Positions 1,556 through 55,470 of a DNA stretch of 64,000 bases are shown here, piece by piece; the first letter of the stretch is position 1, and each line of letters opens with the position of its first letter. Location: NCBI RefSeq assembly GCF_006345805.1, contig NC_043000.1:40796001-40860000 (forward strand), read 5' to 3'. The stretch comes from Octopus sinensis. Lineage: Eukaryota. The notes under the pieces were generated by a model. The model saw only the letters and a list, made by a program, of their open reading frames with translations, had not been told where the DNA came from and did no database searches. Made by a program: the position numbers and the translations under genes.

Positions 1556-1594
1556 GTTTTTCTTTTTCCATGCATTCTTCATCTTCACATTCCG
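1556..1594 (-). CDS. Micro-exon 26 (39 nt, phase 1-1), (T)ECEDEECMEKEK
   Basis: Acceptor ctcactttttttatag, donor gtaagt; open frame; two Cys. Confidence 0.8.
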
Positions 1595-3850
1595 CTATAA
1601 AAAAAGTGAGGGCAGAAACATTAAAAAACCACGTATGCTTAAATAAACAGGCGATTTACTTTACTGTAATCGAATTCGATATCCCTTGATTCTTGGGTTC
1701 AAATACCACCCAGGTCGAATAAGGTATTCGATAATATATATTAAAAGTGCTATATCCCGTGAAATCGCAAGGACAGTGAAATCGCCAAGATAGAGGACTA
1801 ATGTTCAAATCCCTATAGTGACAATGATGACTTTCATAATTAAGGTCGGAATAAAATAAATTAGATCGTAAAGAGATAACCAGATTACTTTAACTATTAA
1901 AATTATAAAGTTAATCAGTTTAGGAATGATTTAGAGGCGGTACTTAAATCTGATTCCAGTAGTATTAGAACAGGTTGATGTAAGATATATTTGATACAGT
2001 TTCCCTTAAGTGAAAGGTACCACAGATTATTATTACTAACTATATAATGTATAATACATCGTATAAAATAAAGTGTCTTGCCCAGAGATACCACAAACAC
2101 AAGACGCTTGCAATGCTAGTCTTTATCTCTTTTATCAAGGTTTCCTTTCTGACAGCATCATCGTGATGCACACAGATAGAACTCTTTTTCACCCCTATTC
2201 TGTCAACTTTGTTGTCCATAAAGTTTAGTTTTGCTACCTACAACCTATCAAAATCCTAACTGCTATCTACCTAAAATGCTGTTTTTTTTATGCTAACTAT
2301 ACCATCCTTCACTTGTCCCTAATACTCCCCGACCATGCATTATCCTCGTGCAAAATAGAAACTTCACGCTAAAGCTGCTCTGATTCCATAAATAGCGACC
2401 TCAAACATCTTCCAACAGAATCATACTAATTTTGATTCCTTCAATAACACAGGCATACAAAGAGTGCTATACATGAGCATTACACATCTAGATCCTTCAA
2501 GGTCACTACTAGAACATTCAAGGTCACTATCATTGAAGACATCTGGTTATTGTACACAAGCATAGCATATTGTACATCAACATAGCAACGACTGCATCAC
2601 AAAGACAGACTGCTTTAGGGCCAGGAAATACTTCGATCCCAACATCTACCAACCCTGTATAAAGCTCGCAAAGAAGTTCTACTACAACATCGACGGTGTT
2701 GCTACTACACGTTTATCCATCCATCCATCCATCCATCCATCCATCGGTCCGCTCGTCCGTACGTGCATATATACTTGTCGCATCCACAAAAAAGTCACCC
2801 AACTAATTGACATGAACTGGTCGACAGCGCTTAAATATCAAATCAATAGATATAATCTCTTTTCTTTGTTTTTTCTACTGTTACCACAATTGTCTCTGCA
2901 CTTCTGATCTAGTTATGGTACTCTTGATTCATTACTTTCTCCTCCTCTTGTTAACCATATTATGCCCCACCAGCCACCTTCTCGGGGCTTCGCATTAACC
3001 ACTACTCATGGACCTTTCTCTGTGATATAGATCAGATCTCTAAAACTCCATCTTTGTCTTTGTTATTTTTTGTACTTATAGCGTGAAGATGAATATATAC
3101 ACCCTCGATCTTACGAGGTTTGGATGTCTTGAGAAAACAATGCGTATAGCTTCTTCCAATGCGTGCTGCTCGGGACAGTCCTTGAGTTTGCCGAGCAACC
3201 TCGGGCCCTCAAACCTATACAGCAGATTAAAAAGAACCGCCCCTATAAAAGTGTGGACCTCCCCCTCGTCCCCTACCCTAGCTACGCTACTAGTTTCTTC
3301 CAGAGATACTACGGATATTAAGGATTTCTATACCTCATCCATGCTCAAGTCATGAACTGTGTTAAGAAGATTCGTTCTGGATTCTCGTTCTGGATTCTTT
3401 TGCTTGAGCTATTACTATATTTTATCGACTCCAGAAATAATGAAAAACCAAAGTTTAACTCGGCAGGATTCGAGCTTAGAACGCAAAAAGCTGAAACAAT
3501 TACCACAAGATACTTTGGCTTATGCTTCAATCACTCTGCTAATCCACCATACACACTAACCGCTAACCAGTAAACAGATATGAGCAATTTGTGGCGACGG
3601 ATGTGGTGTCTTGCGCATTTACTAACATCCCATTAAGTTTTAAGTTCGAATCACTCCGAGATCAACTTTGCTTTTTTACTCAATAAAATAAGTACAAGTT
3701 ATGTACAAAGATCGATATGATCGAGACTACACTTATTTCTTTTAATTCGAGACATTATAGTATGTTAAAAATTTAATAAACAAATATTAATTCTGTAATT
3801 AAAAAAGAAAAGAAAGAAAGTAGAAAACAAAATTAAATCAACTGAATTAC

Positions 3851-3886
3851 TTTCTCGAGTTAAGTCACACGAATCAGCACAAGAAT
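3851..3886 (-). CDS. Micro-exon 25 (36 nt, phase 1-1), xSCADSCDLTRE
   Basis: Acceptor ttttatttctatttgcag, donor gtaatt; two Cys. Confidence 0.75.
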
Positions 3887-4224
3887 CTGCAAATAGAAAT
3901 AAAACGAGAATTAAAACAAGAGAGAGAGAGGGAGAGAGAGAGAGAGAGAGAGAGGGGGAGAGAGAGAGAGAGTGGGAAGGAGGGAACGAAACTCGACTAA
4001 AATATTATATCCAGATAAACAACAAACAAAAACGGAAAAAGGGCAAAACAAAGCTGAATTCTTTAGGAATTTTGAGCTGGAAAGCAAAAAAATTGTCTAC
4101 CACACGACTGTATTTGAGAAAATGATAGTTTATTCTTGTGGATAAAGCTTATTGATAGAAGAGAATTTCCTTCCTTTTCTTGTTTCGTTGAAGAAAAAGT
4201 AAAAAAGTAAATTTACTTCATGAG

Positions 4225-4420
4225 TCACATAGACTCATAGAACCGGTTTCTCGGTTTCCATGGCGTACATATTTCCCACCTGGATGGGACGCCGGTCCGT
4301 CGCAGAGTTATTCATTTTTGCCAATTGAGTGGATTGAAGCAACGTGAAATGAAGTGTTTTGCACAAGAATACATAGTGTCGTCCTGTCCAGGAATCGAAA
4401 CCACGATCTTACGATCATCA
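4225..4420 (-). mobile_element. Third tRNA-SINE family (representative); others at about 470-570, 800-960 (+) and 1170-1400, 5330-5450, 45170-45310 (-)
   Basis: Shared gtggtttcgattcct..gtgttcttg..aaaacacttcatttcacgttgc block. Confidence 0.7.
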
Positions 4421-5114
4421 GAATTAGAGAAAAACTTATGTAAATTACTGGTTAGAAACGGAGTGTTTGTGAACCCACTTCGTTTTTCTCTTGATATATA
4501 TGTATAAAGGAAGGAGACCAATAAATAAAATTGTCCTTATCCTCAATAGTGGCGAAGATGCAGCCATGGAACAGCTGCATGTTAAATCAAATGGTATCTC
4601 TCATTCCTCTTGTCATGCTCTAACGACTCCTTGGCATCTAAGGAGACCTCCTAATGCCGAGGATCAACCGATTCTCATGGATTTTGCTGAATATGAACTT
4701 CTCCTCTCCTAATCACGTAGAACTCGTATCTAATGTTCTTGTACACCATGCATTTGATAATGGATCCCACCTCCTTCGATGCAGCGTTGCTCTTATCTAT
4801 TTGTGGAAGATGTTCTGCAGCTGGTAGACGATGTCAGTCGTCCAGCGACGAGAACCCCCGAGAATGTTTAATGTTTCTTTTCTCTTGAGCACGGATGACA
4901 CGTCCTCGCCAGAGGCCTCGCGGTCATTCTTGATCCTGAATGCAAAGGATCAAGCTACGATCCCTAAATTGCTGTGATGGATTGCTTGATCCATAAACAT
5001 GGGAAGCTTTTTCACTTTCAATGCCGAATTCGGACCTGCCGCATTGATACTGTCAATACATCTAAAAAAAAAAATAAAAGAAGCTAAATTTATGCTCAAG
5101 CTGCGTAACATTAC

Positions 5115-5147
5115 GTAAAGATTTGTTAATAGTATTCATTCGTAAAA
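5115..5147 (-). CDS. Micro-exon 24 (33 nt, phase 1-1), xLRMNTINKSL
   Basis: Acceptor cgttttcctttcag, donor gtaatg; NKS sequon. Confidence 0.55.
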
Positions 5148-6592: not shown

Positions 6593-6643
<51 letters not shown>

Positions 6644-7173: not shown

Positions 7174-7350
<177 letters not shown>

Positions 7351-7417
7351 CTAGATTAGAAACCGGTTCTTTCTCTACTGACAAGAAATCTTGAAATAAA
7401 CTGAATAATGACATACG

Positions 7418-7453
<36 letters not shown>

Positions 7454-7779: not shown

Positions 7780-9830
7780 TTATTAAGAGGAATGTTGTAA
7801 CTGTTCCATAGTTTATAATAATAGAAACACTGTAAAGGTAATACCAGCGGTGTAGCATTGCTGATGTAAATAACACCGAATTCACATTACTGATGTAGCG
7901 TTACTGATGTAATACTACTGACGTAACACGACCGAAATAACATTAATGATGTAAATAAAAACCAACTATATAACACAACTGTAAAATTATGCATGCAACA
8001 ATGCTGATGTAACACTATTGATCTAACAGCACTGATGTAATTCCACTGATGTATCATTCAGCGGGTCGCATGTTGCCAATGACTGGTGTATATCGATGGT
8101 CCTATATCAATGATATTACATCGATGACGTAACATTGATGACGTTAGATTGAGAGTATTTCATCGACAGTGTTATATCAAAAGTTTCAAGGTCAGTGATA
8201 TTGTGTCGATGGTGTTACACATCAGTGATGTTCCATCAATAATGTTACACCAAGAGTGTTACATAAATAATGTTCTGTTAGTGATATTACATTAACAGTG
8301 TTGCGTTACATTAAGGATATAGCGTCAATACTGTTACCACATTTATCTTATATCAGTTGTATTCTGTGAATGATATTCCATCAAGGAGTTACATCAATTG
8401 TGTTACTTCAATCCTGTTCCATAAATGGCGGTCTATTAATGGTGTCATGTATAACAATGACACTACATATTTGCTATTATATCGGCTGCATTCCATCAAC
8501 AGGGTTACCACGGTTGTGTTACATTAGTTATGTTCCTCGGTAGAGTTAAATCAATGTTGTTAGGCCTTAAGTACCACATTTGTGGTGTTACATCAATAGT
8601 GTTGCATCACTGGTGTTACATCGGTGATGTTAGGTAAGTTGTATTACATCGGTTGTGCTACATATATAGTGCTACATCAGGTGTTTATACCAGTAATATA
8701 TCACTGCTGCAATAAATAACACGAGGGATGTAACAATAATGTAACACCTGATGTAACACTACTGACACCATTGTTGTAGCTCTATCAACGTAACCCTACT
8801 AATATAACATCACTGATGTGACAGTATCGTTGTGACACCGAAGATGCAACACCACTTATCTAATACCACTGATGCAATACTACGGATGTTACACCATCGA
8901 TGTAACATCACCGATGTATCATCAATGATGTAACAGTAATAACGTAAAACCACTGAAGTGACAATGCCGGTGTAATATTACTGGTATAAACACCTGATGT
9001 AACACTACATATGTAACACTACCGATGTAATTCAACTTACCTAACATCACCGATGTAACACCAGTGATGCAACACTATTGATGTAACACCACAGATTTAA
9101 CTCTACCGAGGAACATAACTAATGTAACACAACCGTGGTAACCCTGTTGATGGAACGCAGCCGATATAATAGCAAATATGTAGCGTCATTGTTATACATG
9201 ACACCATTAATAGACCGCCATTTATGGAACAGGATTGAAGTAACACAATTGATGTAACTCCTTGATGGAATATCATTCACAGAATACAACTGATATAAGA
9301 TAATTGTGGTAACAGTATTGACGCTATATCTTTAATGTAACGCAACACTGTTAATGTAATATCACTAACAGAACATTATTTATGTAACACTCTTGGTGTA
9401 ACATTATTGATGGAACACCACTGATGTGTAACACCATCGACACAATATCACTGACCTTGAAACTTTTGATATAACACTGTCGATGAAATACTCTCAATCT
9501 AACGTCATCAATGTTACGTCATCGATGTAATATCATTGATATAGGACCATCGATATACGCCAGTCATTGGAAACATGCGACCCGCTGAATTTTCTGAATG
9601 GTACGCCTAACAAAAAGTTACTTTGAATTAATTTAGTAGTGTGATCTGCCTAATAATGAGTCATGTTTCATGCGGACCGCCTAATAATGAAGTATGTCTT
9701 ATGATACCCGCTTTTCGGAAAAGTCTATCTGTGCCTGATAGACATCATTGAGGTTTAATGCTATTGATAGAATACTGCCGATAAAAAAACTATTGATGTA
9801 ACACCATTGGTTAAAAAAACCCCACCAATG
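7780..9830. repeat. Degenerate ~14-bp satellite (ACTGATGTAACACC-like) containing a large palindrome
   Basis: Recurrent ctgatgtaac; arms 8056-8699 and 8975-9590 are reverse complements. Confidence 0.9.
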
Positions 9831-13561: not shown

Positions 13562-13591
13562 CCTCTGAAATAGCAGGAGCAGTAGTTACAT
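13562..13591 (-). CDS. Micro-exon 21 (30 nt, phase 1-1), xVTTAPAISE
   Basis: Pyrimidine-rich acceptor ending ccaattctag, donor AGG|gtaagt. Confidence 0.8.
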
Positions 13592-19253: not shown

Positions 19254-20368
19254 TACCATTATATAACGATGTTCCAAGGCGGCGAACTGGCCGAACCGTT
19301 AGCACGCCGGGCAAAATGCTTATCGGAATTTCCTCCGGGGTTCAAATTCCGCTGAGGTCGACTTTGCTTTAAGGCGGTGAGCTGGCAGAAACGCTAGCAC
19401 GCCGGGCGAAATGCGTAGCCGTATTTCGTCTGCCGTTACGTTCTGAGTTCAAATTCTGTCGAGGTCGACTTTGCCTTTCATCCTTTCGGGGTCGATTAAA
19501 TAAGTACCAGTTACGCAGTGGGGTCGATATAATCGACTTAATCCGTTTGTCTGTCCTTGTTTGTCCTATCTGTGTTTAGCCCCTTGTGGGTAGTAAAGAA
19601 ATAGGTATTTCGTCTGCCGTTACGTTCTGAGTTCAAATTCCGCCTAGGTCGACTTTGCTGTTCATCCTTTCAGGGTCGATAAATTAAGTACCAGTTGCGC
19701 ACTGGGGTTGATGTAATCGACTTAATCCGTTTGTCTGTCCTTGTTTGTTCCCTCTATGTTTAGCCCCTTGTGTACAATAAAGAAACAGGCATTTCGCGTG
19801 TTTTTGTTCTAAGTTCAAATTCTTCCAATATCGACTTTCTTCTTTGGTGTCAATAAAACAAGTACCAGTTGAGCACTGAGGTTTATGTAATCGACTTACC
19901 CTCTCCCCTTAATTTCAGGCTTTGCATCTTTAGCAGATAAGATTACATAGTTAGAACTAAGTAGAGCTAGAGAACGAATGCATTATTCTGAAGTTTTACT
20001 CCAGCATAATAATTAATTAATTTCACAATGACTCTTGAGACATTCATCCAATGATCAATATGAGACTTCCATTTACCATCAACTCCGATCTCTGCTTCAC
20101 ATAATGGACGACATGTTACCGCGTTGTAACTTCTCAATCAGGAATAATTTCAGCGTTTATATGAAACAAGCAACTGTTATCTCTCTAGAAAGATGGCTAC
20201 GTACATAGAAAATATTGTAGAATGTCTGTATCTCAGGAAACAGTGAAAGAGTCGTTGAAGGATAAAAACATTCGTGTCTAATGGCGTAACTATCGGTCAT
20301 ATTATGTTAATATAAGGTAATTAAGATCATGATTTTGTGTGAAAAGTATAGATAAAATATTAACTTAC

Positions 20369-20410
20369 TGTCTGTTTTTGCTGCTTCATTTGTAGAACTG
20401 TTGGTAGTAT
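20369..20410 (-). CDS. Micro-exon 20 (42 nt, phase 1-1), (D)TTNSSTNEAAKTD
   Basis: Acceptor tttcttccatttctag, donor gtaagt; NSS sequon. Confidence 0.85.
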
Positions 20411-21582: not shown

Positions 21583-21630
21583 CGTTTTCAGCTATAGCAG
21601 TATCAGCTTCATCTTTGATTGAATTTAGAA
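21583..21630 (-). CDS. Exon 19 (48 nt, phase 1-1), (V)LNSIKDEADTAIAEN
   Basis: Acceptor tatttcctccag, donor ACG|gtaagt. Confidence 0.85.
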
Positions 21631-24259: not shown

Positions 24260-24301
24260 TTTTGGCGACTTTAGGGTTAAAAGGTGTATCGTCGGAACTG
24301 G
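24260..24301 (-). CDS. Repeat exon copy A (42 nt), xSSDDTPFNPKVAK
   Basis: Long pyrimidine tract then ag; donor gtaagt; homologous to copies B-F. Confidence 0.8.
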
Positions 24302-25753: not shown

Positions 25754-25795
25754 CGAAAGCGGCTTCAGGGTTAAATCCTGTATCGACGAAACTAG
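25754..25795 (-). CDS. Repeat exon copy B (42 nt), xSFVDTGFNPEAAF
   Basis: Acceptor tttcttttaccattttcag, donor gtaagt. Confidence 0.85.
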
Positions 25796-26143
25796 CTGAA
25801 AATGGTAAAAGAAAAAGAAAAGAAATAAAATATTTTTTTAAAGTAAAGACTACATTTATTGAATTAATAAGAAATACTTTTTCACTAGTTGAAAGATCTG
25901 GTGTATGCCTATTGAGCGGATCCCTATATGGTAGCGTACTGGAAATCACATCGCTACCATATTAAAATAAAGATAAACTAGTTCATGTAGATCTTGATGT
26001 AACTGGCTGACTCGTTTTATAACTATTGACCTTTATGAAGTCAAGGCCATATTCTCTTTTTTATCTAAGGTGCGTAAAATGCTGGAAGAAGATGATACGT
26101 GTGTGTATGTGTGTATGTATATATACATGTGCATATATATATA

Positions 26144-26190
<47 letters not shown>

Positions 26191-26192
<2 letters not shown>

Positions 26193-28390
26193 GATATCGG
26201 GACGCACTTTTCAATACTGTTCCAAGAACACACCATAAATCACAACAGGGCACCCCACGTCAACAAGGAACAACTATATGATAGCTACCGTCCCAACCAC
26301 CGCATTCATTTTTTAGACCCAATACGCAAACACAGAGACACAAGATATCACCAAACAGGCAGGAGGACTTACATACCCAGTTTCATCAGGGATGACATCG
26401 ACTTCCAGTCCCATCTTCCCAAAACAACAGAAACAAATTCAGTTTTACTAAGTTTTGATGTGGTAAGCCTCTACACCAATATTCCACACGATTTGGGAAT
26501 AAAGGCGATTAAATACTGGTTAGAAAAACACAGAGAAGTGATTCCCAGAAGATTCACAGTGCCATTTATATTAGACACAGTCAAACTTATTCTAGAAAAC
26601 AACACATTCTTCTTCAATGGAAAGAATTACATCCAAATTAGAGGTACGGCGATGAGAACGAGGTTTGCTCCTGTTTACGCCAACTCTGTAATGGGATACT
26701 TAGAACAACAACTCTACAAAGAGGTGGAGGTAAACTATGGCACTGGATTTAGAAAGTATATTGAAAAGGCATGGAAGAGATACCTTGATGACTGCTTCAT
26801 AATCTGGACAGAATCTCTAAATACTCTGGAAGAGTTCAATATCCTCCTGAACAACCTGCACCCATCACTCCAATTTACAAAGGAGATGAGTAGTACCAAA
26901 TTACCATTCCTAGATATAATGGTAATTAAAAAAGACACCACCATCACCACAGATATATACTATAAACACACAGACACACATCAATACCTAAATTTTAAGT
27001 CGTGCCATCCACCACATACAAAACGCAACATCCCATACTGCCTAGCCAGAAGAACTTGTACCATTATAGAAGATGCAAATATCAGGAACAAACGCCTAAC
27101 AGAACTAAGAGAATTTTTGCTCAAACAAAAATACCCATCTCTATTTATAGAAAATGGCATACAGCGGGCTATAAAAATACCCATACAACAACTTAGGACA
27201 ACCCAAGGAAGGGGAAAACAAGAACAAGTCATACCATTCATAGTGACACACAACCCATGTCACCAGAATATCTTCAACATTGCCAAAGCAAAACTACCAA
27301 TCATTGCCCAAAGTAATGAATTAAAAGACATAATCACGGATCGAGCTTTGGTTCTTAGTAAAAGACAGCCTAAAATCTTGAAAAAATTACTAACAAAGGC
27401 AAAATTTGACCTTAGCAACAAAGACCAAACATTCACTGTATCTAAATGCAATGATAGCTGATGTGGCACATGCCAATTCATACATACCGGCCAATATATA
27501 AACACAAAAACCGGGAAAATATTCACAAACGCGAATATTTAATTTACTGCATCAAATGCCCAAATTGTGAAGAAATATATGTAGGTCAGACGGGAAATGC
27601 ACTATCAGAACGCTCACGTGTACACCGACAGCAGATTAGAGACCCAGAGGTCCGTCAGATACCTTTGAGTGACCACCTAGCAACATGTGGTCGGAAAATA
27701 TATATAATATTTCCATTCTACAAATAATACAGCTCAAGTGAAATCGAGAGGAAAATCAGAGAAAAGAATTTAATTGATAAATTCGAACCCAAGCTAAATA
27801 AGCAATAATAATAATACTTAGATAGCAGGAAAACTATCTTATTTAGGGCTAAAAGTTCTATTGCCACTACCATCACCACTAGCAACAATAATTAAGGTGC
27901 TGACAATGATAATGATAACAATTGAAATATAAAAATATAAAAATCTCTGACAAGGCTATTTACAACATTTCTAAAAATAGCCCAACAATTGCTGCTTCGG
28001 CCAGGGTCAAGATACAGGACTCTTGACATGTCCAACAAAGCGTGACGCCTAAACCAATCAGCTCAACCAACCAATCAGCTTAAGTAACTGAGTGATACTA
28101 CACACTGATTGGTCAGAATACAGTTTGCAAAACCTAGCAATCTGAAGCCTACACAGCTGTATTTAAGGTACAGATTCAATCATCTCGCTACAGTCAAAAA
28201 TTGTGAAGCATGACTGTTACCACTACTACATGAACCTGAAGATTGCAGAATTTAATGCATGAAAGTACTAGTTCAATCAGAATGAACATTTAACATTCTA
28301 TTATTTTATTTTATTTTATTATATTATATTATCTTATATCATTATAAGATTGTAAATAAAACGTGAAAATCAGACAAGGTTGGAATTCCT
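26191..28390 (+). mobile_element. Penelope-like element (RT and GIY-YIG) with 3' pseudo-LTR, degenerate, antisense in an intron
   Basis: SFDVVSLYTNIP, GTAM, RYLDD, LPFLD; IYCIKCPNCEEIYVGQT; TGA at 27459 and later frameshifts; hammerhead downstream; flanked by (TA)n. Confidence 0.9.
28231..28275 (+). ncRNA. Minimal type I hammerhead ribozyme of the Penelope pLTR
   Basis: tgaac-CTGAAGA-ttgca gaatttaa tgcat-GAAA-gtac-TA-gttca; stem I 5 bp, stem II tgca/tgca, palindromic stem III AGTACT. Confidence 0.8.
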
Positions 28391-29394: not shown

Positions 29395-29436
29395 TTAAAG
29401 CAGCATCAGGGTTAAAAGCTGTATCGTCGACTCTAG
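29395..29436 (-). CDS. Repeat exon copy C (42 nt), xRVDDTAFNPDAAL
   Basis: Acceptor ttcttataccattttcag, donor gtaagt. Confidence 0.85.
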   Translation of the reverse strand, partial: LESTIQLLTLMLL

Positions 29437-30317: not shown

Positions 30318-30350
<33 letters not shown>

Positions 30351-30368
30351 TATATTATATATATATAG

Positions 30369-30416
<48 letters not shown>

Positions 30417-30522
30417 CATACACATATACATACATACACACATATATATATAATATATATATATATACATATATATATACATATATATATTATATAGGTA
30501 TAATATATATATATATATATAT

Positions 30523-30581
<59 letters not shown>

Positions 30582-30598
30582 TTTCGTAAACTTTCCCC

Positions 30599-30670
<72 letters not shown>

Positions 30671-30671
30671 C

Positions 30672-30706
<35 letters not shown>

Positions 30707-30913
30707 ATACATATATATATTAATATATATATATTATATATACTATATATATATATACATATATATATATACATATATATATAATATATATATTATATAT
30801 ATCTTATAATATATATATATATATATATATTATATTATATATATATATATATATAATATATATATTATATATTAATAATTATTATATTATATATTATTAT
30901 ATAATATATATAT

Positions 30914-30967
<54 letters not shown>

Positions 30968-31407
30968 CAGATATATATATATATATATATATACATATAT
31001 AATATTATATTACATAATAATATATATGTATATATATATATATAAATATATGTATGTATGTATGTGTGTGTCTGGGGTTTGTGTGTGTATTTGATCTTGA
31101 TATTTACGGAACAAAAGTTAAGTGAGAAGGAATTTCGGTGATTTTTTGTTGCTCATAAGTTTAAATGTTCACTTAGATGTATCTGTCCAGTATTAGGATC
31201 TCGTATTTCTTGCCTGTGAATACTGAGTGTGTTTCTCAAAATCTCGTTTGACTTTGAAATTTTCGTTGCAACGACTACATTAAATAGCATAAAATGTATT
31301 CTTTGATGACCATGTGAAATTATTTTTACAGTGAAATTTGTTTTTAAGCATAAATTTATGCACACATACACACACACATGCATACATATATATATTTACC
31401 GACTTAC

Positions 31408-31449
31408 TTAAATCGGCTTCAGGGTTAAAAGCTGTATCACCGACTCTAG
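31408..31449 (-). CDS. Repeat exon copy D (42 nt), xRVGDTAFNPEADL
   Basis: Same acceptor and donor as the other copies. Confidence 0.85.
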   Translation of the reverse strand, partial: LESVIQLLTLKPI

Positions 31450-32513: not shown

Positions 32514-32555
32514 TTAAAGTGGCTTCGGGGTGAAAAGCTGTATCGTTGGAACTAG
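32514..32555 (-). CDS. Repeat exon copy E (42 nt), xSSNDTAFHPEATL
   Basis: Same acceptor and donor; NDT sequon. Confidence 0.85.
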   Translation of the reverse strand, partial: LVPTIQLFTPKPL

Positions 32556-33628: not shown

Positions 33629-33670
33629 TTAAAGCGGCTTCAGGGTGAAAAGCTGTATCGTTGGAACTAG
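33629..33670 (-). CDS. Repeat exon copy F (42 nt), xSSNDTAFHPEAAL
   Basis: Same acceptor and donor; NDT sequon. Confidence 0.85.
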   Translation of the reverse strand, partial: LVPTIQLFTLKPL

Positions 33671-34806: not shown

Positions 34807-34854
34807 TCTTTGCATATATGCTAGTAACTTTTGCGTTTGTAGTAGTATGTAAAA
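34807..34854 (-). CDS. Exon 11 (48 nt, phase 1-1), xLHTTTNAKVTSIYAK
   Basis: Acceptor tattatttcttctag, donor AGA|gtaagt. Confidence 0.8.
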
Positions 34855-36478: not shown

Positions 36479-36520
36479 TCTTTGCATCTTCAGTAGGATC
36501 TGTTGTGTTCATGGCAGTAT
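36479..36520 (-). CDS. Micro-exon 10 (42 nt, phase 1-1), (D)TAMNTTDPTEDAK
   Basis: Acceptor tttttcaattttag, donor AGA|gtgagt; NTT sequon. Confidence 0.85.
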
Positions 36521-38574: not shown

Positions 38575-38997
38575 TTGCTTGTCAGTTGTTTGACCTTAAC
38601 CAGTTGAGCATGTCCCTTAGTGGCTGACGATATGTGCATCTCTAATCACGAGCAGAAGTAGTGGGGGAGCATCATAGCCATGTGTTGAGAGGGATTCTCT
38701 GGGGTTTGAATAATTCACCTCTGGAAACATGGGTGTTTCGTTCAACATACTTAAACAACCCTTATTCAGGGACCTTTTGAGCGGGATGGGCTACTCAACC
38801 TGAAGAAAATTCTAACTGGGCCCCACCTGCAAGGTCATGTGCTGTTTATCTTGATATGAGATCACCATGTCGCGCACATATGGCTCTGATGCATGTGCCA
38901 AGTGTACCCTTATCAGACGGGTAGTCATGATGGGTATATTGGGCTTCGTATATTTTACCCCAATGTCACTTTGATGGCATGAACTGCTCTCTCACTC

Positions 38998-38998
<1 letters not shown>
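38574..38998 (+). mobile_element. ~425-bp non-coding interspersed repeat beside (TAA)n; copies at 41130-41555 (+) and partial copies at 35400-35830, 36040-36290, 36880-37050 (-)
   Basis: Direct similarity among copies; the full copies end in a TAA run. Confidence 0.75.
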
Positions 38999-39034
<36 letters not shown>

Positions 39035-39036
39035 TG

Positions 39037-39101
<65 letters not shown>

Positions 39102-39425
39102 CTTTTCTACTCTAGGCACAAGGTCCGAAATTTTAGGGGAGGGGGTCAGTCGATTAGATCGACTCTAGTACGCAACTGTACTAAATTTATCGACGAAGGC
39201 AAGTCGACCTCGGCAGAATTTGGAACTCAGAACATAGCGGCAGCGGAATCATTGGTACCCGCACAAAATGCTTAGCCATTTCCTCCGTGTTTACATTCTG
39301 AGTTCACATGCCGCCTGGTCAGTTTTGCCTTTCACAATTTGGGGTCTATAAATAGTACCAGTTGAGCAGTGGGGTCAATGCAACCGATTTACCCTTTCCG
39401 AACATAAAGATATACATCAACTTAC

Positions 39426-39497
39426 CCATTTCGTGTTCAGTAGTAGCATTTGCAGCTTTGGAAGCGGCTGAATTAGAAGAGATAATTTCATTCAGTT
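39426..39497 (-). CDS. Exon 9 (72 nt, phase 1-1), (E)LNEIISSNSAASKAANATTEHEM
   Basis: Acceptor gtctttttag, donor TGG|gtaagt; NAT sequon. Confidence 0.8.
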
Positions 39498-39668
39498 CTA
39501 AAAAGACTTGCCTAACAGAATTTCTACAGTGTCTGCTAATCTTCCTTTACAGTTTGAGTTTGAATCTTGCCGTATTAGCTCATATAGTTTCCTGTAAATT
39601 ACTCGGTGTCCCAGTAACATGTAAGCGGACAAAACATACATTCACTCTCGCATATAATACATCAGTTC

Positions 39669-39852
<184 letters not shown>

Positions 39853-40059
39853 GATATATATATATATATGTTGATTCGCTAGCCTCTGCACGCATTTTTT
39901 TCTCTCCTTGTTTCTTTTCTGTGTATTTTTCTGTTGAAGAGTGTAGGCTCGAAACGTAAAAAGACTTGTTTTATTTCTATTCCTGAGCGCCATACTAATA
40001 CAATTTTTGTTTGTATTCCACCTGCCTTCGTCTTTTGTTTATTTTCATGAAGCTTCCCG

Positions 40060-40139
<80 letters not shown>

Positions 40140-40981
40140 TGTGTGGTGTGTATTTATATAGTAGAAATTGTGCTTACATTTAGATGTACGACCGCTACCG
40201 TTATGTTCGACGTAGATTATCCAAATCCAACCTGCTTCCCGTATAGTTAAGTAATTTCTATATTGAGTAGTATTATTAGGTATGAGCTACAGAGCTACGA
40301 GAGGAGATAGAATATACCCACGCATTTATTTTTTATATATGGGTACATATACACTTCTGACATAATTGTTAGCTTAGGTAGAACCCACATATCGGGTAAT
40401 GCATATTGTTTGGTATATACACACGCATATGCTTCTTACATCCAATATGATAAAGATTAAAGTAAAATTAGCAGATTCTGTCAATAAAGTTTCAAACATT
40501 AATTGTTTTTACAAAACAGCGAAATGCGCTGAAGTAAGTTAAAATGATACATCCCTTTGGGTATGCAACCTCACACTAAGTCGACTGACGGTAGGGTCTA
40601 ATGAAGAACCTATTTAAACAATCACCTGAAAAGTTGTATATTTTACACCTTGGACGCGTGATAATGATTACACAACATCTTAGTGCTATACTACAGGTGT
40701 AAAAATTTATCAAAACAATTTTTAAATAATGAATATCATTCATTCCATTTTCTATAATTTATCTACACATACACATAAACATACATGCACACACACACAC
40801 ACACACACACACACCACACACACACACACACACACTTGCACATGAATGTATATATATTCCTGTCTCAGGCAGATTTCGGAATAATATGCATGCATTATAG
40901 TTTTTGGAAGGGAAATATATTTTCTAGATCTCTTTCAACAATCAACGACATGAATATTGTATATATGAATTAACGACTTAC

Positions 40982-41020
40982 CGTTTTCACCAGAAGCAAA
41001 ACGTCCGAATAATTGGGGTT
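40982..41020 (-). CDS. Micro-exon 8 (39 nt, phase 1-1), xPQLFGRFASGEN
   Basis: Acceptor tttttctttctctttgtag, donor ACG|gtaagt. Confidence 0.85.
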
Positions 41021-41080
41021 CTACAAAGAGAAAGAAAAACACAATATACTTACAATAAACTGTACAAGCTAATAATAATA

Positions 41081-41130
<50 letters not shown>

Positions 41131-41552
41131 TTGCTTGTCAGTTGTTTGACCTTAACCAGTTGAGCATGTCCTTAGTGGCTGACGATATGTGCATCTCTAA
41201 TCACGAGCAGAAGTAGTGGGGGAGCATCATAGCCATGTGTTGAGAGGGATTCTCTGGGGTTTTGAATAATTCACCTCTGGAAACATGGGTGTTTGTTTCA
41301 ACATACTTAACCACCCTTATTCAGGGACCTTTTGAGCGGGATGGGCTACTCAACCTGAAGAAAATTCTAACTGGGCCCCACCTGCAAGGTCATGTGCTGT
41401 TTATCTTGATATGAGATCACCATGTCGCGCACATATGGCTCTGATGCATGTGCCAAGTGTACCCTTATCAGACGGGTAGTCATGATGGGTATATTGGGCT
41501 TCGTATATTTTACCCCAATGTCACTTTGATGGCATGAACTGCTCTCTCACTC

Positions 41553-41587
<35 letters not shown>

Positions 41588-41601
41588 TGATAATAATAAT
41601 A

Positions 41602-41655
<54 letters not shown>

Positions 41656-41988
41656 CTTTTCTACTCTAGGCACAAGGTCCGAAATTTTAGGGGAGGGGGT
41701 CAGTCGATTAGATCGACTCTAGTACGCAACTGGTACTAAATTTATCGACCGAAGGCAAAGTCGACCTCGGCAGAATTTGAACTCAGAACATAGCGGCAGC
41801 GGAATCATTGGTACACCGCACAAAATGCTTAGCGACATTTCCTCCGTGTTTACATTCTGAGTTCACATGCCGCCTGGTCAGTTTTGCCTTTCACAATTTT
41901 GGGGTCTATAAAATAAGTACCAGTTGAGCAGTGGGGTCAATGCAACCGATTTACCATTTCCCGAACATAAAGATATACATCAACTTAC

Positions 41989-42061
41989 CCATTTCGTGTT
42001 CAGTAGTAGCATTTGCAGCTTTGGAAGCGGCTGAAATTAGAAGAGATAATTTCATTCAGTT
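41989..42061 (-). CDS. Duplicate of exon 9 with one extra base (73 nt): pseudo-exon or sequencing error
   Basis: Matches 39426-39497 except gaaatt versus gaatt, which shifts the frame. Confidence 0.6.
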
Positions 42062-42241
42062 CTAAAAAGACTTGCCTAACAGAATTTCTACAGTGTCTGC
42101 TAATCTTCCTTTACAGTTTGAGTTTGAATCTTGCCGTATTAGCTCATATAGTTTCCTGTAAATTACTCGGTGTCCCAGTAACATGTAAGCGGACAAAACA
42201 TACATTCACTCTCGCATAATAACATCAGTTCATCTATCTAA

Positions 42242-42275
<34 letters not shown>

Positions 42276-42288
42276 CATCTATCTATCT

Positions 42289-42337
<49 letters not shown>

Positions 42338-42458
42338 TATATATATAATATTATATATATATATATGTATATATGTAGGTCCGGGTTGATTCGGGGTTAA
42401 CCACAGTAAATAAGGTATCAATACATAGCAGAGTAAAATTAATTTATTATATAGAAGG

Positions 42459-42509
42459 AGCTTCTACAGGACTAGAACTGTTTCATTCAAGAGAAATCTT
42501 CAGGAAGCT
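42459..42509 (-). ncRNA. Type I hammerhead ribozyme in a pLTR-like insertion (about 42375-42720)
   Basis: agcttc-CTGAAGA-tttc tctt gaat-GAAA-cag ttctagtc ctg-TA-gaagct; stem I 6 bp, stem III 4 bp, GUA cleavage triplet. Confidence 0.75.
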
Positions 42510-42921
42510 AGTTAACAAGAATTGTATTGGCATTTATACATTTAGGCAGGTTTTAAAGGGGGTGGTGGGGGACTTTTTGGGGGTAGGCATAGCGCAAAAA
42601 ATCATACTTGGGGGAGTGGTCAAGGAGTCAGTGTTAAAATAGATAGGAGAATAAATAAAAAATAAAAAATAAAAAATAAAAAATAAAAAATAAAAAATAA
42701 AAAATAAAAAATAAAAAATATATATATATATGTTGATTCGCTAGCCTCTGCACGCATTTTTTTCTCTCCTTGTTTCTTTTCTGTGTATTTTTCTGTTGAA
42801 GAGTGTAGGCTCGAAACGTAAAAGACTTGTTTTATTTATATTCCTGAGCGCCATACTAATACAATTGTTTGTTTGTATTCCACCTGCCTTCGTCTTTTGT
42901 TTATTTTCATGAAGCTTCCCG

Positions 42922-42976
<55 letters not shown>

Positions 42977-43630
42977 GTGTGTGTGTGTGTGTGTGTGTGT
43001 GTATTATATAGTAGAAATTGTGCTTACATTTAGATGTACGACCGCTACCGTTATGTCGACGTAGATTATCCAAATCCAACCTGCTTCCCGTATAGTTAAG
43101 TAATTCTATATTGAGTAGTATTATTAGGTATGAGCTACAGAGCTACGAGAGGAGATAGAATATACCCACGCATTTATTTTTATATATGGGTACATATACA
43201 CTTCTGACATAATTGTTAGCTTAGGTAGAACCCACATATCGGTAATGCATATAGTTTGGTATATACACACGCATATGCTTCTTACATCCAATATGATAAA
43301 GATAAAGTAAAATTAGCAGATTCTGTCAATAAAGTTTCAAACATTAATTGTTTTTACAAAACAGCGAAATGCGCTGAAGTAAGTTAAAATGATACATCCC
43401 TTTGGGTATGCAACCTCACACTAAGTCGACTGACGGTAGGGTCTAATGAAGAACCTATTTAAACAATCACCTGAAAAGTTGTATATTTTACACCTTGGAC
43501 GCGTGATAATGATTACACAACATCTTAGTGCTATACTACAGGTGTAAAAATTTATCAAAACAATTTTTAAATAATGAATATCATTCATTCCATTTTCTAT
43601 AATTTATCTACAATACACACAAACATACAT

Positions 43631-43678
<48 letters not shown>

Positions 43679-43827
43679 CACACTTGCACATGAATGTATA
43701 TATATCCTGTCTCAGCGATTTTCGGAATAATATGCATGCATTATAGTTTTTGGAAGGGAAATATATTTTCTAGATCTCTTTCAACAATCAACGACATGAA
43801 TATTGTATATATGAATTAACGACTTAC

Positions 43828-43866
43828 CGTTTTCACCAGAAGCAAAACGTCCGAATAATTGGGGTT
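43828..43866 (-). CDS. Duplicate of exon 8 (39 nt), xPQLFGRFASGEN
   Basis: Identical exon and splice sites to 40982-41020. Confidence 0.8.
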
Positions 43867-43916
43867 CTACAAAGAGAAAGAAAAACACAATATACTATAC
43901 AATAAACTGTACAAGC

Positions 43917-43971
<55 letters not shown>

Positions 43972-47752: not shown

Positions 47753-47902
47753 TTTTTGTATCTGCACTGTCTTTTGCAGCTGCAGAGCCTTTTGCATGTG
47801 TGGTACCTTTCATAGGGCCAGTATGTGAGGTATCATTTTTTGATGCAGTACTGTTTGCATGGGCAGTACCGTTTGCATGGGCAGCGTGATTGGTATGAGT
47901 GC
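47753..47902 (-). CDS. Exon 4 (150 nt, phase 1-1), (G)THTNHAAHANGTAHANSTASKNDTSHTGPMKGTTHAKGSAAAKDSADTK
   Basis: Acceptor tttcttttatcctag, donor gtaagt; open 150 nt; NGT, NST and NDT sequons; internal 18-nt-period repeat. Confidence 0.9.
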
Positions 47903-50345: not shown

Positions 50346-50437
50346 AAGGTAAGTCTACATTAATTCACATATTTGTTTTCTTGTGATTTACCTTGCATTT
50401 ACTTCGCATTGATTTTGCCTTACCCACGATCCTTTAT

Positions 50438-50473
<36 letters not shown>

Positions 50474-50521
50474 TGATTGATTCTAGTTTCAGCTCATGAG
50501 CTGTGGCCATGCTGGGGCACC

Positions 50522-50567
<46 letters not shown>

Positions 50568-50571
<4 letters not shown>

Positions 50572-52401
50572 CAAATTTGAGATTTTACCAATAGAACCGC
50601 AACTCCTATTTCAGGACAACCTTATTGTCTGGAATACACATAGAAAGTTATATCCTATATAATAATAAAATGATATAAGCATTTTAAAATCTACTATGAA
50701 GTACAATAAAATTATTTAAAAAAGGTATCTATAAAATATTTGTAAAAATATATATATCTTATCTGTTATTAGTCTCTGAGGAAAGAAAATATTTTCAATC
50801 AACACTACACGTGTTTCTGCACTGGTGCTGTATTTTTCCAGGTTATACCTATTACATAAATCTACCAGTGCCTCCTCCTACAATTTATCTTATTGTTATT
50901 TTTATTAACAGAACAAAGTTAAAAGTACATACTGTAGATACATATTAAATAGAATCCTTCAAAAATCCCAAATTAATAACTTTGACAGGTTTAAGTAGAT
51001 ACATATGGGAATTGAAATCCGAGAAAATAGAATACACGCTTAATTGGAATATCATTAGTAGAGCGAAGTCATATAGAATAGGTAATTAAATGTGCTTATT
51101 ATGCACATCTGAGTTTATGAAAATACTCCAGTCGAGAGAGGTATTACTGAACAGTATTGAAGAGAGAGAGGAATAAAATGCCGACATAAGAATAACTTTA
51201 CGTATAATAAAATGAAAAATATATAAAATTATCCCGCCCCCACAAGTATGTAATCTCTTAAACAACTACGAGGAAGATAGTTAAATGTAGTTATAATAGA
51301 ATTATATAATAGTATTAGATACGGATATACCAAGAACATATTTAAAGAATATTACCTTAAAAGGAATAGACAGGTCACATTTAATATAATATAAATCTCT
51401 AAATCTTAAACACTAGAAAGAAATCCAGTTATAGCAAGATTGTAGAGTATCAAAAATTCAACCTCCCCTTGAATTCAACTTCTCTAATAGTATTAGTCTT
51501 AGAGAATTTTTCAGAGTAGTTTATTTTATTGATGTTATTCCCATAATACTTAGCGCACGACAGAAGGAGCAGCCATTTGCACAGGAACGAGAAAGAATAA
51601 ACATTATGTTGATAAGTATTTTTCCTTTGTTAATTTGGTTTACTAGATTCATTTAATAGTTTTATTCAATAAATTTATAACGTATATAGAGGTTTTTATT
51701 TATAATTACTATTAACTTTCGTTTGAAATAAAAATGGTAATTTATACTTGTATAGATAGGGGTAAATCTTACACTAAATTATTAATTCCCATAATGTTTA
51801 TATAGACAGGTAGTGGATTTTCGACGTGTTTATAATATAGTCGTTGAGGGTTTCTTTATGTTTAGCATTTTCTAGATATATCGGTATTGTATTTTTAGGT
51901 GTTTAATTTTATCAATCTTTATTAATTTGTTAACTTTTTAAATTTTTTAATCATTTAATTTTTAAGAATATATTTTAAGTTATATATTTTAATTATATTT
52001 TTATTTATATTCTTATTTTTCTATTTAATATGTATTAGAATATGTAGTTTTAACTTTGGTCCGTTAATAATAATAACAATAAGATAAATAGCCTGAGGAC
52101 TCACTGGTGGATTTAAGTAATAGGTATAGCCTGGAAAAACATACCACCAGCGCAGAAACATGTGTCGCGTTGATTAAAAATACCTTCTTTCCCCACAGAC
52201 TAATAACAGGTAAAGTATATATATTTTTTCAAATATTTTATAAATAAGTTTTTTAAATAATTTTATTGTACTTTATAGTTGGTTTTAAAATGCTTATATT
52301 TTATTATTATATAGGATATAACTTTCTATGTGTATTCCAGACAATAATGTTGTCCTGAAATAGGAGTTTTGGTTCTATTGGTAAAATCCCAAATTTGTAA
52401 T
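50568..52401. mobile_element. 1.8-kb non-autonomous element with ~310-bp terminal inverted repeats
   Basis: 50568-50877 is the diverged reverse complement of 52095-52401; AT-rich non-coding interior; left end abuts (TA)n. Confidence 0.75.
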
Positions 52402-52499
52402 AATATTATAAATGATGCTGTTTACATTGAATTAGTAAGTGTAAAATAGTAAATGTCCTGATAACCTGGAATACTTATTATTCCCTAAGTTGTTTTTAA

Positions 52500-52553
<54 letters not shown>

Positions 52554-54115
52554 GAGCGTTGTTCCAAATATATACTATCGTTTTCAAAATTACAGATCTA
52601 AAAGGTACTAACTGCGGTATCTGACAATACCCGGGTGCCATATATGTAAAAGCATTTTTATTAAAATTAAATGACTTAAGTTATAGCAAGATTTTATATA
52701 GTGGATTTGTTTTTAATTATATTTGCTCATATTTTTTAATGAATTTACATGTCTAAGGTTAAATATTTTATGGTTTCTATGATGTATAAAGCTTTCGGGG
52801 GTCTTTATTGATAATTTTAATTTTGTCATTCTAAGATATGAATTTTTGAATTACGAATTTTAAAAACGATAGCGCTTCAATATTTGATTATTTTTGATGA
52901 CCATTAATAAGTCCCACAAGCAGTTCCTCAAGGTTTCTGGAGTTGAACTTACGAGTCCATATTTTTCCCACGTGCAATTTTATTTTGCATGCTCATGTGA
53001 TCCTCAAAGCAGTTATCTTTTCATCAGATCCCCAAACTGCATAAAGACAATATTTTTGTAGGCTTTGCTGAATATTTTACATTTCTCGTAGAACTGCTTC
53101 TGTTTTATGTGTCGTGTATTAATTTAAAATATCAAGAAACTATTTAAGTTAGACTTAAAGATGGTATATTCGTAACTCACTAAATTAAAAATATCAATAA
53201 ATGCAGTCTCAAAAGTTTCGTCATCATAAAAACCAAAAATGCTTAACTTTAGACATGTATCTGTATTATAATAAAAATATATGCAAACATGGTGACACAA
53301 AAAAGCGCCACGTAAAATTGTCCAGAAGTTAAATCCTTTAAGTTTACCAAAAATGTTTCTACATGTTTGATGTATGGGCAACGCTGGGTAACTCTGCTGG
53401 TATTTAGTATTTCTCTGACTGCTCTGGATGCTGAAACCGATAGATCTGCCTAATGGGATATTTTGCAGTATTTAGCTTTATCTCTTTAGGTTTTGTGTTA
53501 CACTCTCGCTGGGTGAGCTGAAGCAAGTATTAGCAAGTCACTGGTGGTCTTTTGCTTCTGTTGCTATTGTCTGAGTTAGATAACATTATTTATTATTATC
53601 TTACAAAGACACCAACGTTTTGTCTGTATTTGCAATCAACATTAATCCTTGAATTACAAATATATCAATATCTTGTCATTGTTAGAAATCAACAATAATC
53701 CCAGCCTTAATTGCGTAAAATCGGTAGATCGTCTGCCAAAATGCGCTTTTATATTTAGTCATTGTCTTTTAAGTTCTGATTCAAATCCTTTTATGATTTC
53801 GGAATCTTTAAAATCAAAGTACTGGCCAAGGTGATGTAATTGACAATAATCCTATCCTAAAGTTTGAGATTCCGAGTTGTTTTTTGCTATGAATCAGTAC
53901 AAATGGTTGTTTTACAAAGACAGAAATTTTTTGCCTATGTTAGAAATAGGTTTGAATTATTGCCTTACAAAGCGAAGGATCTTTTGTCAGTTACAAAGCT
54001 ATATCAATAAGAGAAGATAATGTTGCATTTAGGTTTTATAAGATATATTTTCTACAAATTTTCTTTACTCTCAGAATGCAATGACAAATATAATATAAAT
54101 GAATTATTAACGCAC

Positions 54116-54154
54116 CATTTTCACTGATTACTGTCTTTCCCACACGTTCGGGCT
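54116..54154 (-). CDS. Micro-exon 3 (39 nt, phase 1-1), (E)PERVGKTVISEN
   Basis: Acceptor ctttctattttcag, donor ATG|gtgcgt. Confidence 0.75.
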
Positions 54155-54562
54155 CTGAAAATAGAAAGTAGGCATTTTTTAATATTTCAATGAGAATTAA
54201 TGAAGACTACATGAAAGTAAAATCTACCAGGATGAACCCTTCTGGATAAAATAAGTACTATGCAAATTCTCTGACCCATATAGTCAGCTGTGCACTTCCT
54301 GAAAAATTAGAGAACTTGTGCTTTAGGTATTGGTTGACATAAATCTATGCTTTCTAAAGACACGTATGTTTTGTTTATATTAGAAAACAGCCTGAATTAT
54401 TGCCTTAAAATCCAATACTGCTGTCTATGTTATTAATCAATACTTATAAGAGAAAATATTGTTGCATTTAGGTTTTACAGGGAAGAAGATAAATTTTCTG
54501 AAAATTCTTTTTCATTTCAGAAGACAATTATAAATACTGTATAAATGGATTTATTAGCATAC

Positions 54563-54601
54563 CACGTTCATTGGAAGTAATTGTCTCCTCCGTTTTGGAC
54601 T
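54563..54601 (-). CDS. Micro-exon 2 (39 nt, phase 1-1), (E)SKTEETITSNER
   Basis: Acceptor ttgctatttttcag, donor GTG|gtatgc; same position as exon 3 within a ~450-bp tandem unit. Confidence 0.75.
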
Positions 54602-55455
54602 CTGAAAAATAGCAAGCAGAATTATTTTATTTCAGAAGATATGATGTTTCGATTAAAAACTACTAGAAAGTAAAATTCGTCAGAATGATTATATTTATAC
54701 ATTTGTTAGATTTCAGCTTGCGTAAAGTAAAGTAATTATGTTATAAATTTCTGAAAATTTCTTTCTTTAGGCTAGTGGAAAATTGAAAGAACAAGTATTG
54801 AGACGTAAATTAAGAATACAGCATAATATTTGGGAGCTTATGTCTGATAAGCAGCTTTAATCATAGATTTTACCATTTCTAGGTAAATAATGATAGTTTA
54901 CATAGAGACAGGGTCTAAAGTTTTGAGGGCGAATGGCGTTGTTGGTTAAATCAGTCCTAGTACTCATTCGGAAGGAACTTGACCCAGAATGTGAAGAGCT
55001 GGAACAAATCTGCAAAACATTTTCCGGTGCTCTAACAATTTTTAAGCATAATATAAACCTTTAATAACTTTGATGAAAGTAATCATCAACTATAGATCAT
55101 AAACACTATTGTATATTTTATACACTTTATTTACTATAAACTATATTTAGTACGAACTCTTAGGACTTAGAAAATACTTTCCAGTTGCGACACACTTGCT
55201 TAGTTATCTTTCGTGGCATCATAACACAATCGCATAACACAATCACATAACACAATCACAGCATAACATAATTGCTTCACATATAAAACATTTCCATGGC
55301 GAGAAAATAGTTGTTGATCCTATTATGTTACTAACGTACAATCCACATGAGAATATTGCTGTTGAACATTCATATATCCTTGATTGTAAACCTGTGGTAT
55401 TTACACTCACTTACTCTTTCCAGCGAACCTAATTATATCTTCACTACACACTTAC

Positions 55456-55470
55456 CTTGAAAATATAAAG
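55456..55470 (-). CDS. Micro-exon 1 candidate (15 nt, phase 1-1), xLYFQ
   Basis: Acceptor actttcag, donor AAG|gtaagt; short enough to be a chance match. Confidence 0.5.

Follow-up and report, generated by a model that had tools for sequence, protein, structure and literature searches.

Does a repeat-rich stretch of octopus DNA hold a protein-coding gene assembled almost entirely from very small exons? The question is raised by the window analysed here, the 64,000 nucleotides of Octopus sinensis contig NC_043000.1 from position 40,796,001 to 40,860,000 (forward strand, assembly GCF_006345805.1). A preliminary description, made from the sequence alone, had proposed a hidden gene of 26 tiny symmetric exons encoding a mucin-like, secreted or surface protein of about 390 aa. 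Our analysis makes it quite likely that the window contains a lineage-restricted Octopus protein-coding gene on its minus strand, with a coding sequence (CDS) that falls almost wholly into small symmetric exons, mostly of 30-66 nt with further exons of 114 and 150 nt, each starting and ending in intron phase 1 (phase 1-1). The window appears to carry the 3′ two-thirds of this gene. Because each exon is 1-1, splicing could retain or leave out any combination of them and still keep the frame. We regard the architectural reading as right and the biochemical one (secreted, mucin-like, shuffle-spliced) as a guess. The window itself has a GC content of 35.5%, with dense microsatellites, tandem elements resembling short interspersed elements (SINE-like) and fragments of long interspersed elements (LINEs); a repeat-rich, AT-rich composition of this kind is usual for eukaryotic intron and intergenic DNA.

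Splice-site pairs on the minus strand

A strict scan of both strands looked for pairs in which an AG acceptor behind a pyrimidine tract is followed, 15-150 nt away, by a GTRAGT donor. The minus strand gave 83 such pairs, 40 of them symmetric (length divisible by 3), of which 28 (21 distinct donors) were open in phase 1-1, whereas the plus strand gave 35 pairs, six symmetric and two open in phase 1-1 (two distinct donors). As a null we used 200 shuffles preserving dinucleotide composition within 2-kb blocks, in which phase 1-1 pairs numbered 4.5 ± 2.4 (maximum 11) and distinct donors 3.9 ± 1.9 (maximum 9). Measured against the shuffles the minus-strand excess is about 6-fold, and measured against the opposite strand 14-fold; it is found in one phase only. 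A generic splice-site matrix, applied at a summed score of at least 12, returned 19 phase 1-1 candidates on the minus strand versus one on the plus strand. The preliminary description had pointed to the density of phase-1 pseudo-exons on the opposite strand as a check on its proposal; that density is far below the minus-strand figure, and its observation of many short symmetric segments between pyrimidine-tract AG acceptors and GTAAGT or GTGAGT donors is upheld.

The number of exons has to be revised. Relaxing the donor rule crowds both strands with pseudo-exons, and relaxed scans intended to recover all 26 exons were swamped by this two-strand background. Some 12 additional weak minus-strand candidates sit at the plus-strand background level (9-20), which is why it matters that phase had been used earlier in accepting the weaker exons. 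A set of 17 robust exons stood, all of them phase 1-1 and with splice sites close to consensus (GTAAGT at 16 donors, GTGAGT at one). They belong to about nine unrelated paralogue families, each of which is phase 1-1, and for most exons phase 1 is the sole open frame. Joined, the 17 encode 270 aa rather than about 390, with 11 N-X-S/T sequons. A few exons beyond the 17 are plausible, and the remainder of the 26 look indistinguishable from noise. Some strict matches were rejected: those at 48331-48311 and 44791-44654 lie inside SINE-like repeats and that at 41170/41068-41054 inside a microsatellite. The unverified candidate at 62812-62780 (minus strand) is counted among the strict matches to discount.

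An unnamed gene model in Octopus vulgaris

In a word-indexed search of 5.8 billion proteins, the 270-aa joined peptide had a single match, CAI9721792.1 (A0AA36F281_OCTVU; E = 1e-79), a 307-aa 'Hypothetical predicted protein [Octopus vulgaris]'. The reverse complement of the window is 95-98.7% identical to O. vulgaris chromosome OX597817.1 at about 129.53-129.57 Mb (locus L001), where the CAI9721792.1 model extends over 85.6 kb. An identity of this order points to a source within the O. vulgaris species complex, be it a different individual, a haplotype or a sister species. This model splices nine of the window exons (150, 39 and 42 nt, four members of a 42-nt family, then 48 and 42 nt), joined in the phase-1 frame and matching exon by exon exactly or nearly exactly. 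All 14 of its internal exons are divisible by 3 and phase 1-1, as are the upstream exons of 66, 66, 114, 30, 30 and 33 nt, which lie past the high-coordinate end of the window. The proposal of a single gene of symmetric phase-1 micro-exons, paralleling the micro-exon genes (MEGs) of Schistosoma, is borne out to this extent. The word 'hidden' has to be dropped, as the gene is already publicly annotated in O. vulgaris, but it is nameless, undescribed and 5′-truncated. Of the public annotations of cephalopods represented among the proteins searched, apparently only this one includes the gene, and the locus provides a concrete example of why such orphan genes escape annotation.

Read along the minus strand (exons are named here by their higher coordinate), the series begins with a 150-nt phase 1-1 exon at 47753-47902, THTNHAAHANGTAHANST...DSADTK, which has strong splice sites and internal 18-nt repeats, corresponds to CAI9721792.1 residues 104-152 and shows 0/150 differences from its O. 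vulgaris orthologue. A 39-nt exon at 43828-43866 (PQLFGRFASGEN; residues 154-165) and a 42-nt exon at 41989-42030 (ASKAANATTEHEM; residues 166-179), both phase 1-1, are carried by one unit (copy A) of a tandem duplication of 2.8 kb. Copy B carries identical exons at 40982-41020 (39 nt, single copy in L001) and 39426-39467 (42 nt). One exon had been described earlier as a duplicate longer by one nucleotide; by our count the duplicated pairs measure 39 and 42 nt, and the sole 1-nt difference is a deletion in the intron before the 39467 acceptor. Next come a 42-nt phase 1-1 exon at 36479-36520 (TAMNTTDPTEDAK), which has a GTGAGT donor, and its 48-nt phase 1-1 paralogue at 34807-34854 (LHTTTNAKVTSIYAK). 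The 42-nt DTAFNPE family follows, at 33629-33670 (SSNDTAFHPEAAL), 32514-32555 (SSNDTAFHPEATL), 31408-31449 (RVGDTAFNPEADL; residues 180-193, one amino-acid difference), 29395-29436 (RVDDTAFNPDAAL; residues 194-207), 25754-25795 (SFVDTGFNPEAAF; residues 209-221) and 24260-24301 (SSDDTPFNPKVAK; residues 222-235). Two further phase 1-1 exons, of 48 nt at 21583-21630 (LNSIKDEADTAIAEN; residues 236-251) and 42 nt at 20369-20410 (TTNSSTNEAAKTD; residues 252-265, one amino-acid difference), precede the terminal coding exon of the public isoform at 19968-20098 (EIGVDGKW...NNAFVL). The latter ends in a TAG stop at 19970-19968, which the preliminary description had missed when it reported that no stop was found.

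Only one isoform of the gene is public. Exons 36520, 34854 and 33670 are omitted from it, and their O. vulgaris orthologues are intact, being identical to them in sequence and in splice sites (for exon 36520, 0/42 differences at L001 ~80208). Judged from the two genomes, this would fit skipping of cassette exons. Exon 32555 is a recent second copy of exon 33670 and its O. vulgaris counterpart is single-copy.

The whole gene covers at least 86 kb, with its exons dispersed through repeat-rich introns. Paralogous exon units sit locally rather than dispersed, in duplication units of about 1.1 kb and 2.8 kb, and of 5.2 kb upstream in O. vulgaris, that carry one or two exons each. The gene has expanded by tandem duplication of intron segments bearing one or two exons. 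In the 2.8-kb case the copies, at 38645-41124 and 41200-43971, are 95.6-97.3% identical and bear the 39- and 42-nt exons; O. vulgaris assembly L001 has a single copy, which reflects either a difference in copy number or a collapse or expansion in assembly.

At its 5′ end the public model is incomplete. L001 carries a 66-nt phase 1-1 exon (ESSENPHRNMHMFNNRDDGSSE) three times in tandem, at 4735, 9969 and 15218, with a spacing of 5.2 kb. For its start codon the annotation takes the second ATG within the second of these copies; since the start lies within a tandemly repeated exon with a further copy upstream of it, the real 5′ end is missing and the model is 5′-truncated. A signal-peptide first exon was not found in the upstream 28.5 kb of L001, a stretch reaching from 10 kb ahead of the annotated start to 18.5 kb beyond it, where the scan gave only microsatellite junk. 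Neither the window nor the O. vulgaris locus as retrieved extends to the true 5′ end.

The 3′ end is likewise uncertain, at least as to whether the terminal exon is the only one. No AATAAA was seen in about 590 nt downstream of this exon, which could be an internal stop-bearing exon or could be followed by an intron in the 3′ untranslated region. A strong GTAAGT donor is present 68 nt 3′ of the annotated stop (19900-19966, minus strand).

For the O. vulgaris annotation, assemblies from Iso-Seq and RNA-seq were used together with aligned proteins and ab initio prediction (PMC10700109). It is unlikely that a 16-exon micro-exon model was produced without junction evidence behind it. Some points count against leaning on the model too heavily: it may be partly ab initio and therefore cannot count as wholly independent of those splice signals, its start is an internal ATG in a duplicated exon, and the acceptor of its terminal exon is weak.

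Comparison of the two genomes and of the duplicated exons gives further evidence on coding. Between the window and O. vulgaris, 4/908 exon positions differ, against about 1.2% of positions in the ±200-nt flanks when large indels are excluded and 2.9% when they are included. The six copies of the 42-nt family (consensus xxxDTAFNPEAAL) keep a fixed length and an open frame, although their flanks contain indels. Within this family the exon is the most divergent section of each duplicated unit, with a pooled pairwise divergence of 21% there versus 6.8% in the 113 nt upstream. Exons 25795 and 24301 are identical at 29/42 positions, compared with 493/521 over flanks of about ±350 nt (Fisher p = 1.6e-5); exons 31449 and 29436 are identical at 37/42 positions, compared with 372/374 upstream; a further Fisher test of exon-versus-flank divergence between paralogues gave p = 1.3e-4. 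Within the DTAFNPE modules the core D-T-x-F-N-P is retained, with substitutions concentrated at both module ends.

Divergence centred on the exon could possibly reflect selection for diversity, a spacer-like module under relaxed constraint, or mosaic gene conversion that spares the exon. Pooled pN/pS of the paralogous exons is 1.13, with synonymous differences likewise raised, and neither the 66-nt exons nor the duplicated 39- and 42-nt exons show acceleration or an identity dip. The dip is seen in one exon family only. Near-identical duplicates that diverge at the exon offer a natural experiment, in which selection on a 14-residue module can be set against the mutational background.

The encoded product and its competing readings

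The window-encoded part of the product has a pI of about 5 and contains 18.6% Ala, 23.5% Ser + Thr, 8.1% Asn and 4.5% Pro, with no Cys and no Trp. We describe it as an acidic, Ala/Thr/Asn/Asp/Glu-rich, His-containing and cysteine-free polypeptide that is probably disordered. A single-sequence AlphaFold model had a mean predicted local distance difference test (pLDDT) score of 44, a low value that is compatible with disorder and weak evidence for it. The mucin class named in the preliminary description does not match, the levels of Ser + Thr and Pro falling outside a Pro/Thr/Ser (PTS)-type composition and the repeats being split one per micro-exon; mucin-like domains are Pro/Thr/Ser-rich, have dense O-glycosylation sites and usually keep their tandem repeats inside large exons. 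Suckerins, and also the histidine-rich beak protein, considered for their A/T/H and G/Y modules, gave no sequence match; both families have been reported missing from O. bimaculoides (PMC9068888).

Where the product acts is harder to say. In the window-encoded part we counted 10 sequons, with 4.5 expected from composition (shuffle p = 0.005), and the upstream O. vulgaris exons encode acidic serine clusters of SSEESSE and SSEDHDE type together with a G/Y/H/R-rich stretch (RGGHLVRPQYGGYGYD). A uniform phase 1, like clusters of acidic S-x-E type, is more usual in extracellular modular proteins and secretory phosphoproteins. Because sequons are at about twice expectation and the upstream motifs are of SSEE type, we lean towards the secretory pathway, and from sequence features we give roughly even chances to a glycosylated, perhaps also phosphorylated, protein of that pathway. 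Several results have to be set against the overall reading. Duplicated exons partly inflate the sequon excess; the known part has no signal peptide, transmembrane (TM) segment, glycosylphosphatidylinositol (GPI)-like tail or hydrophobic segment (maximum KD19 0.74), so that the earlier 'secreted or surface' label goes beyond what was found in a sequence that excludes the true 5′ end; no Pfam domain was found; and a phmmer search with CAI9721792.1 of 1.84 billion representative proteins returned no homologue, only the protein itself and one marginal match (E = 4e-4). The marginal match is an intronless 708-aa open reading frame (ORF) on a metagenome contig of 35% GC (L002 3001-5127; ENA ERZ25072999, ctg317878), in which about 20 tandem 15-aa repeats (TEDKAAINPEVDL) are followed by a Trypsin_2-like domain. 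Its repeats weakly resemble the octopus DTAFNPEADL module. We did not accept it as a homologue, the match being marginal and the ORF intronless, and the resemblance is probably convergent.

An intracellular location is the direct alternative to secretion. The product might be a cytosolic or nuclear low-complexity protein in which the N-X-S/T sites go unused, a reading that the lack of any signal peptide or hydrophobic segment in the known part would suit, as would the G/Y/H/R-rich upstream exons, since such composition is also known from intracellular phase-separating proteins. We find it rather doubtful, given the twofold sequon excess and a uniform phase 1 combined with acidic S-x-E clusters, which are more typical of extracellular and secretory proteins; moreover, because the 5′ end is missing, the absent signal peptide is uninformative. 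The same missing end feeds a different possibility, namely that the array is the variable linker or stalk of a larger gene whose signal peptide, folded domains and TM or cytoplasmic parts lie outside the window, the 307-aa model being a fragment. An annotated start at an internal ATG of a repeated exon with another copy 5 kb upstream, a weak terminal acceptor with no poly(A) signal in the following ~590 nt, and a further pair of well-formed phase 1-1 exons on the downstream side (13591, and 1594 with its different, Cys-containing composition) would all agree with it, and the likeness to the CD44 and CD45 stalks and to titin PEVK keeps it alive. On the other hand, no other gene is called in the 105-kb O. 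vulgaris locus, the downstream candidates occur in no database protein, and two additional strict matches are within chance expectation. We consider this, too, possible but on the unlikely side.

Two further explanations concern the exons themselves. If they were chance or repeat-derived pseudo-exons, the public model would be an ab initio artefact and nothing would be spliced or translated; relaxed donor rules do fill both strands with pseudo-exons, and some strict matches (48331, 44791) do fall inside SINE-like repeats. We hold this to be very improbable in view of the strand- and phase-specific excess under the strict rule, the same phase in about nine unrelated exon families, the retention of a 42-nt length and an open frame by six diverged paralogues despite flank indels, the better conservation of exons than of flanks between two genomes, and the local arrangement of paralogous units. 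Least credible of all is a Dscam1-like scheme, in which competing RNA pairing would pick a single member of the 42-nt family at a time and a conserved 113-nt upstream element would be the selector. Such an intron element does precede every family member (92-99% identical), but the window has no complementary docking sequence, its matches being A/T-rich and at most 13 nt long, and the public isoform contains four family members consecutively, which contradicts mutual exclusion provided that this isoform derives from transcripts; for these two reasons we reject a Dscam-type mechanism. The favoured explanation remains a gene of small symmetric phase-1 exons. Its most far-reaching version, an independent cephalopod counterpart of the MEGs that makes a secreted, N-glycosylated and disordered protein from combinatorial micro-exons, with one exon family under exon-targeted diversifying selection between introns that remain almost the same, we judge improbable as a whole. 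If true, it would imply that a free-living mollusc uses the protein at an interface, for example in saliva or venom, in mucus, in the egg coat or in immunity.

Among known systems the closest in architecture are the Schistosoma MEGs, which have most of the CDS in very small symmetric exons of 3-81 bp with long introns (bioRxiv 10.1101/2023.06.21.545858; PMC4350168), and which 'appear to be restricted to platyhelminths' (PMC4350168). The octopus CDS likewise consists mostly of small symmetric exons between long introns, in a gene of narrow lineage with a low-complexity product and the possibility of frame-safe skipping. Schistosome MEG exons diverge fast, with dN/dS up to about 1.1 (PMC4350168; bioRxiv 10.1101/2023.06.21.545858), comparable to the pooled pN/pS of 1.13 in the octopus gene. 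The differences are that no sequence relationship emerged from the phmmer search, that the host is a free-living mollusc, that the octopus exons are somewhat larger (mostly 39-48 nt, also 66, 114 and 150 nt) in a locus of more than 86 kb, and that all MEG products have a signal peptide, whereas none is seen in the known octopus part. Alternative splicing of MEG micro-exons yields a pool of variant proteins; for the octopus gene the single public isoform, lacking three intact exons, is what can be compared. On sequence grounds the octopus gene appears to be a MEG analogue in architecture and not a member by descent. In the literature we searched there was no report of a micro-exon gene for octopus, cephalopods or molluscs, and nothing on the accessions or peptide strings. 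If transcripts confirm it, the locus would supply a clear micro-exon gene architecture outside flatworms and would indicate that such genes can originate independently, through tandem duplication of exon-bearing intron segments.

Casein and SCPP genes are similar in their numerous short exons, which share a single phase and are subject to duplication and skipping, and in their acidic disordered products with S-x-E clusters (confined in the octopus gene to the upstream O. vulgaris exons, SSEESSE). SCPP and casein exons, however, are phase 0, and SCPP is a vertebrate family; with all octopus exons in phase 1, no homology and no signal-peptide exon identified, membership in this class was rejected. 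The CD44 v-exons, CD45 exons A/B/C and titin PEVK resemble the octopus array as runs of symmetric cassette exons that encode freely combinable disordered segments and originated by exon duplication. Those arrays have larger exons and lie within genes with folded domains, while the octopus array is the entire known CDS, with no flanking domains known. Snake PLA2 and conotoxin genes are cases in which exons diverge more than introns, and the octopus duplicates share with such accelerated toxin families an identity that dips exactly at the exon (69% versus about 95% over ±350 nt). They differ in that a single octopus exon family is affected, synonymous sites are raised as well, and there is no cysteine framework or toxin-like domain. 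Neuronal microexons (PMC8797185) are isolated exons of 27 nt or less in otherwise ordinary genes for structured proteins; this programme was set aside for octopus exons of 30-66 nt that make up the whole known CDS.

Candidate exons and repeats in the window

Outside the series described above, a few segments remain as unverified candidates, all on the minus strand. Two paralogous 39-nt phase 1-1 candidates with weaker donors lie at 54563-54601 (SKTEETITSNER, GTATGC donor) and 54116-54154 (PERVGKTVISEN, GTGCGT donor); the second ends in '...EN G', as do four confirmed exons. The last two exons of the preliminary description, both phase 1-1 with strong splice sites, are a 30-nt segment at 13562-13591 (VTTAPAISE, of fitting composition) and a 39-nt segment at 1556-1594 (ECEDEECMEKEK, of atypical, Cys-containing composition). 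They now fall beyond the annotated stop, and one or two strict matches of this kind are expected by chance under the shuffle null. Its first exon, a 15-nt segment at 55456-55470 encoding LYFQ, has a poor acceptor tract and an atypical composition, and is probably a chance match. No database protein shares words with candidates 62812, 55470, 54601, 54154, 13591 or 1594.

Mobile-element sequences are found in introns of the gene. At 58703-62170 (plus strand) there is an intact LINE ORF of 1156 aa, in which an endonuclease, a reverse transcriptase and a zf-RVT domain are recognised. The element is missing at the orthologous O. vulgaris site, where window positions 58820-62657 correspond to L001 61657-61671; because of this absence we take it to be a recent insertion, possibly still active. 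An ORF of 487 aa at 25998-27458 (plus strand), which weakly matches reverse transcriptase, is located between two exons of the 42-nt family, in their shared intron, and also exists in O. vulgaris. Simple repeats are common as well. A 601-nt inverted repeat at 8056-8656 and 8990-9590, with arms 93% complementary and a 333-nt spacer, is composed of a degenerate 14-nt satellite, and its arms contain near-identical 70-aa ORFs (one substitution) on opposite strands. The intron separating exons 31449 and 29436 contains a (TA)n tract of 746 nt (30318-31063), and many of the introns flanking exons open with ATGT or TG microsatellites directly after the donor.

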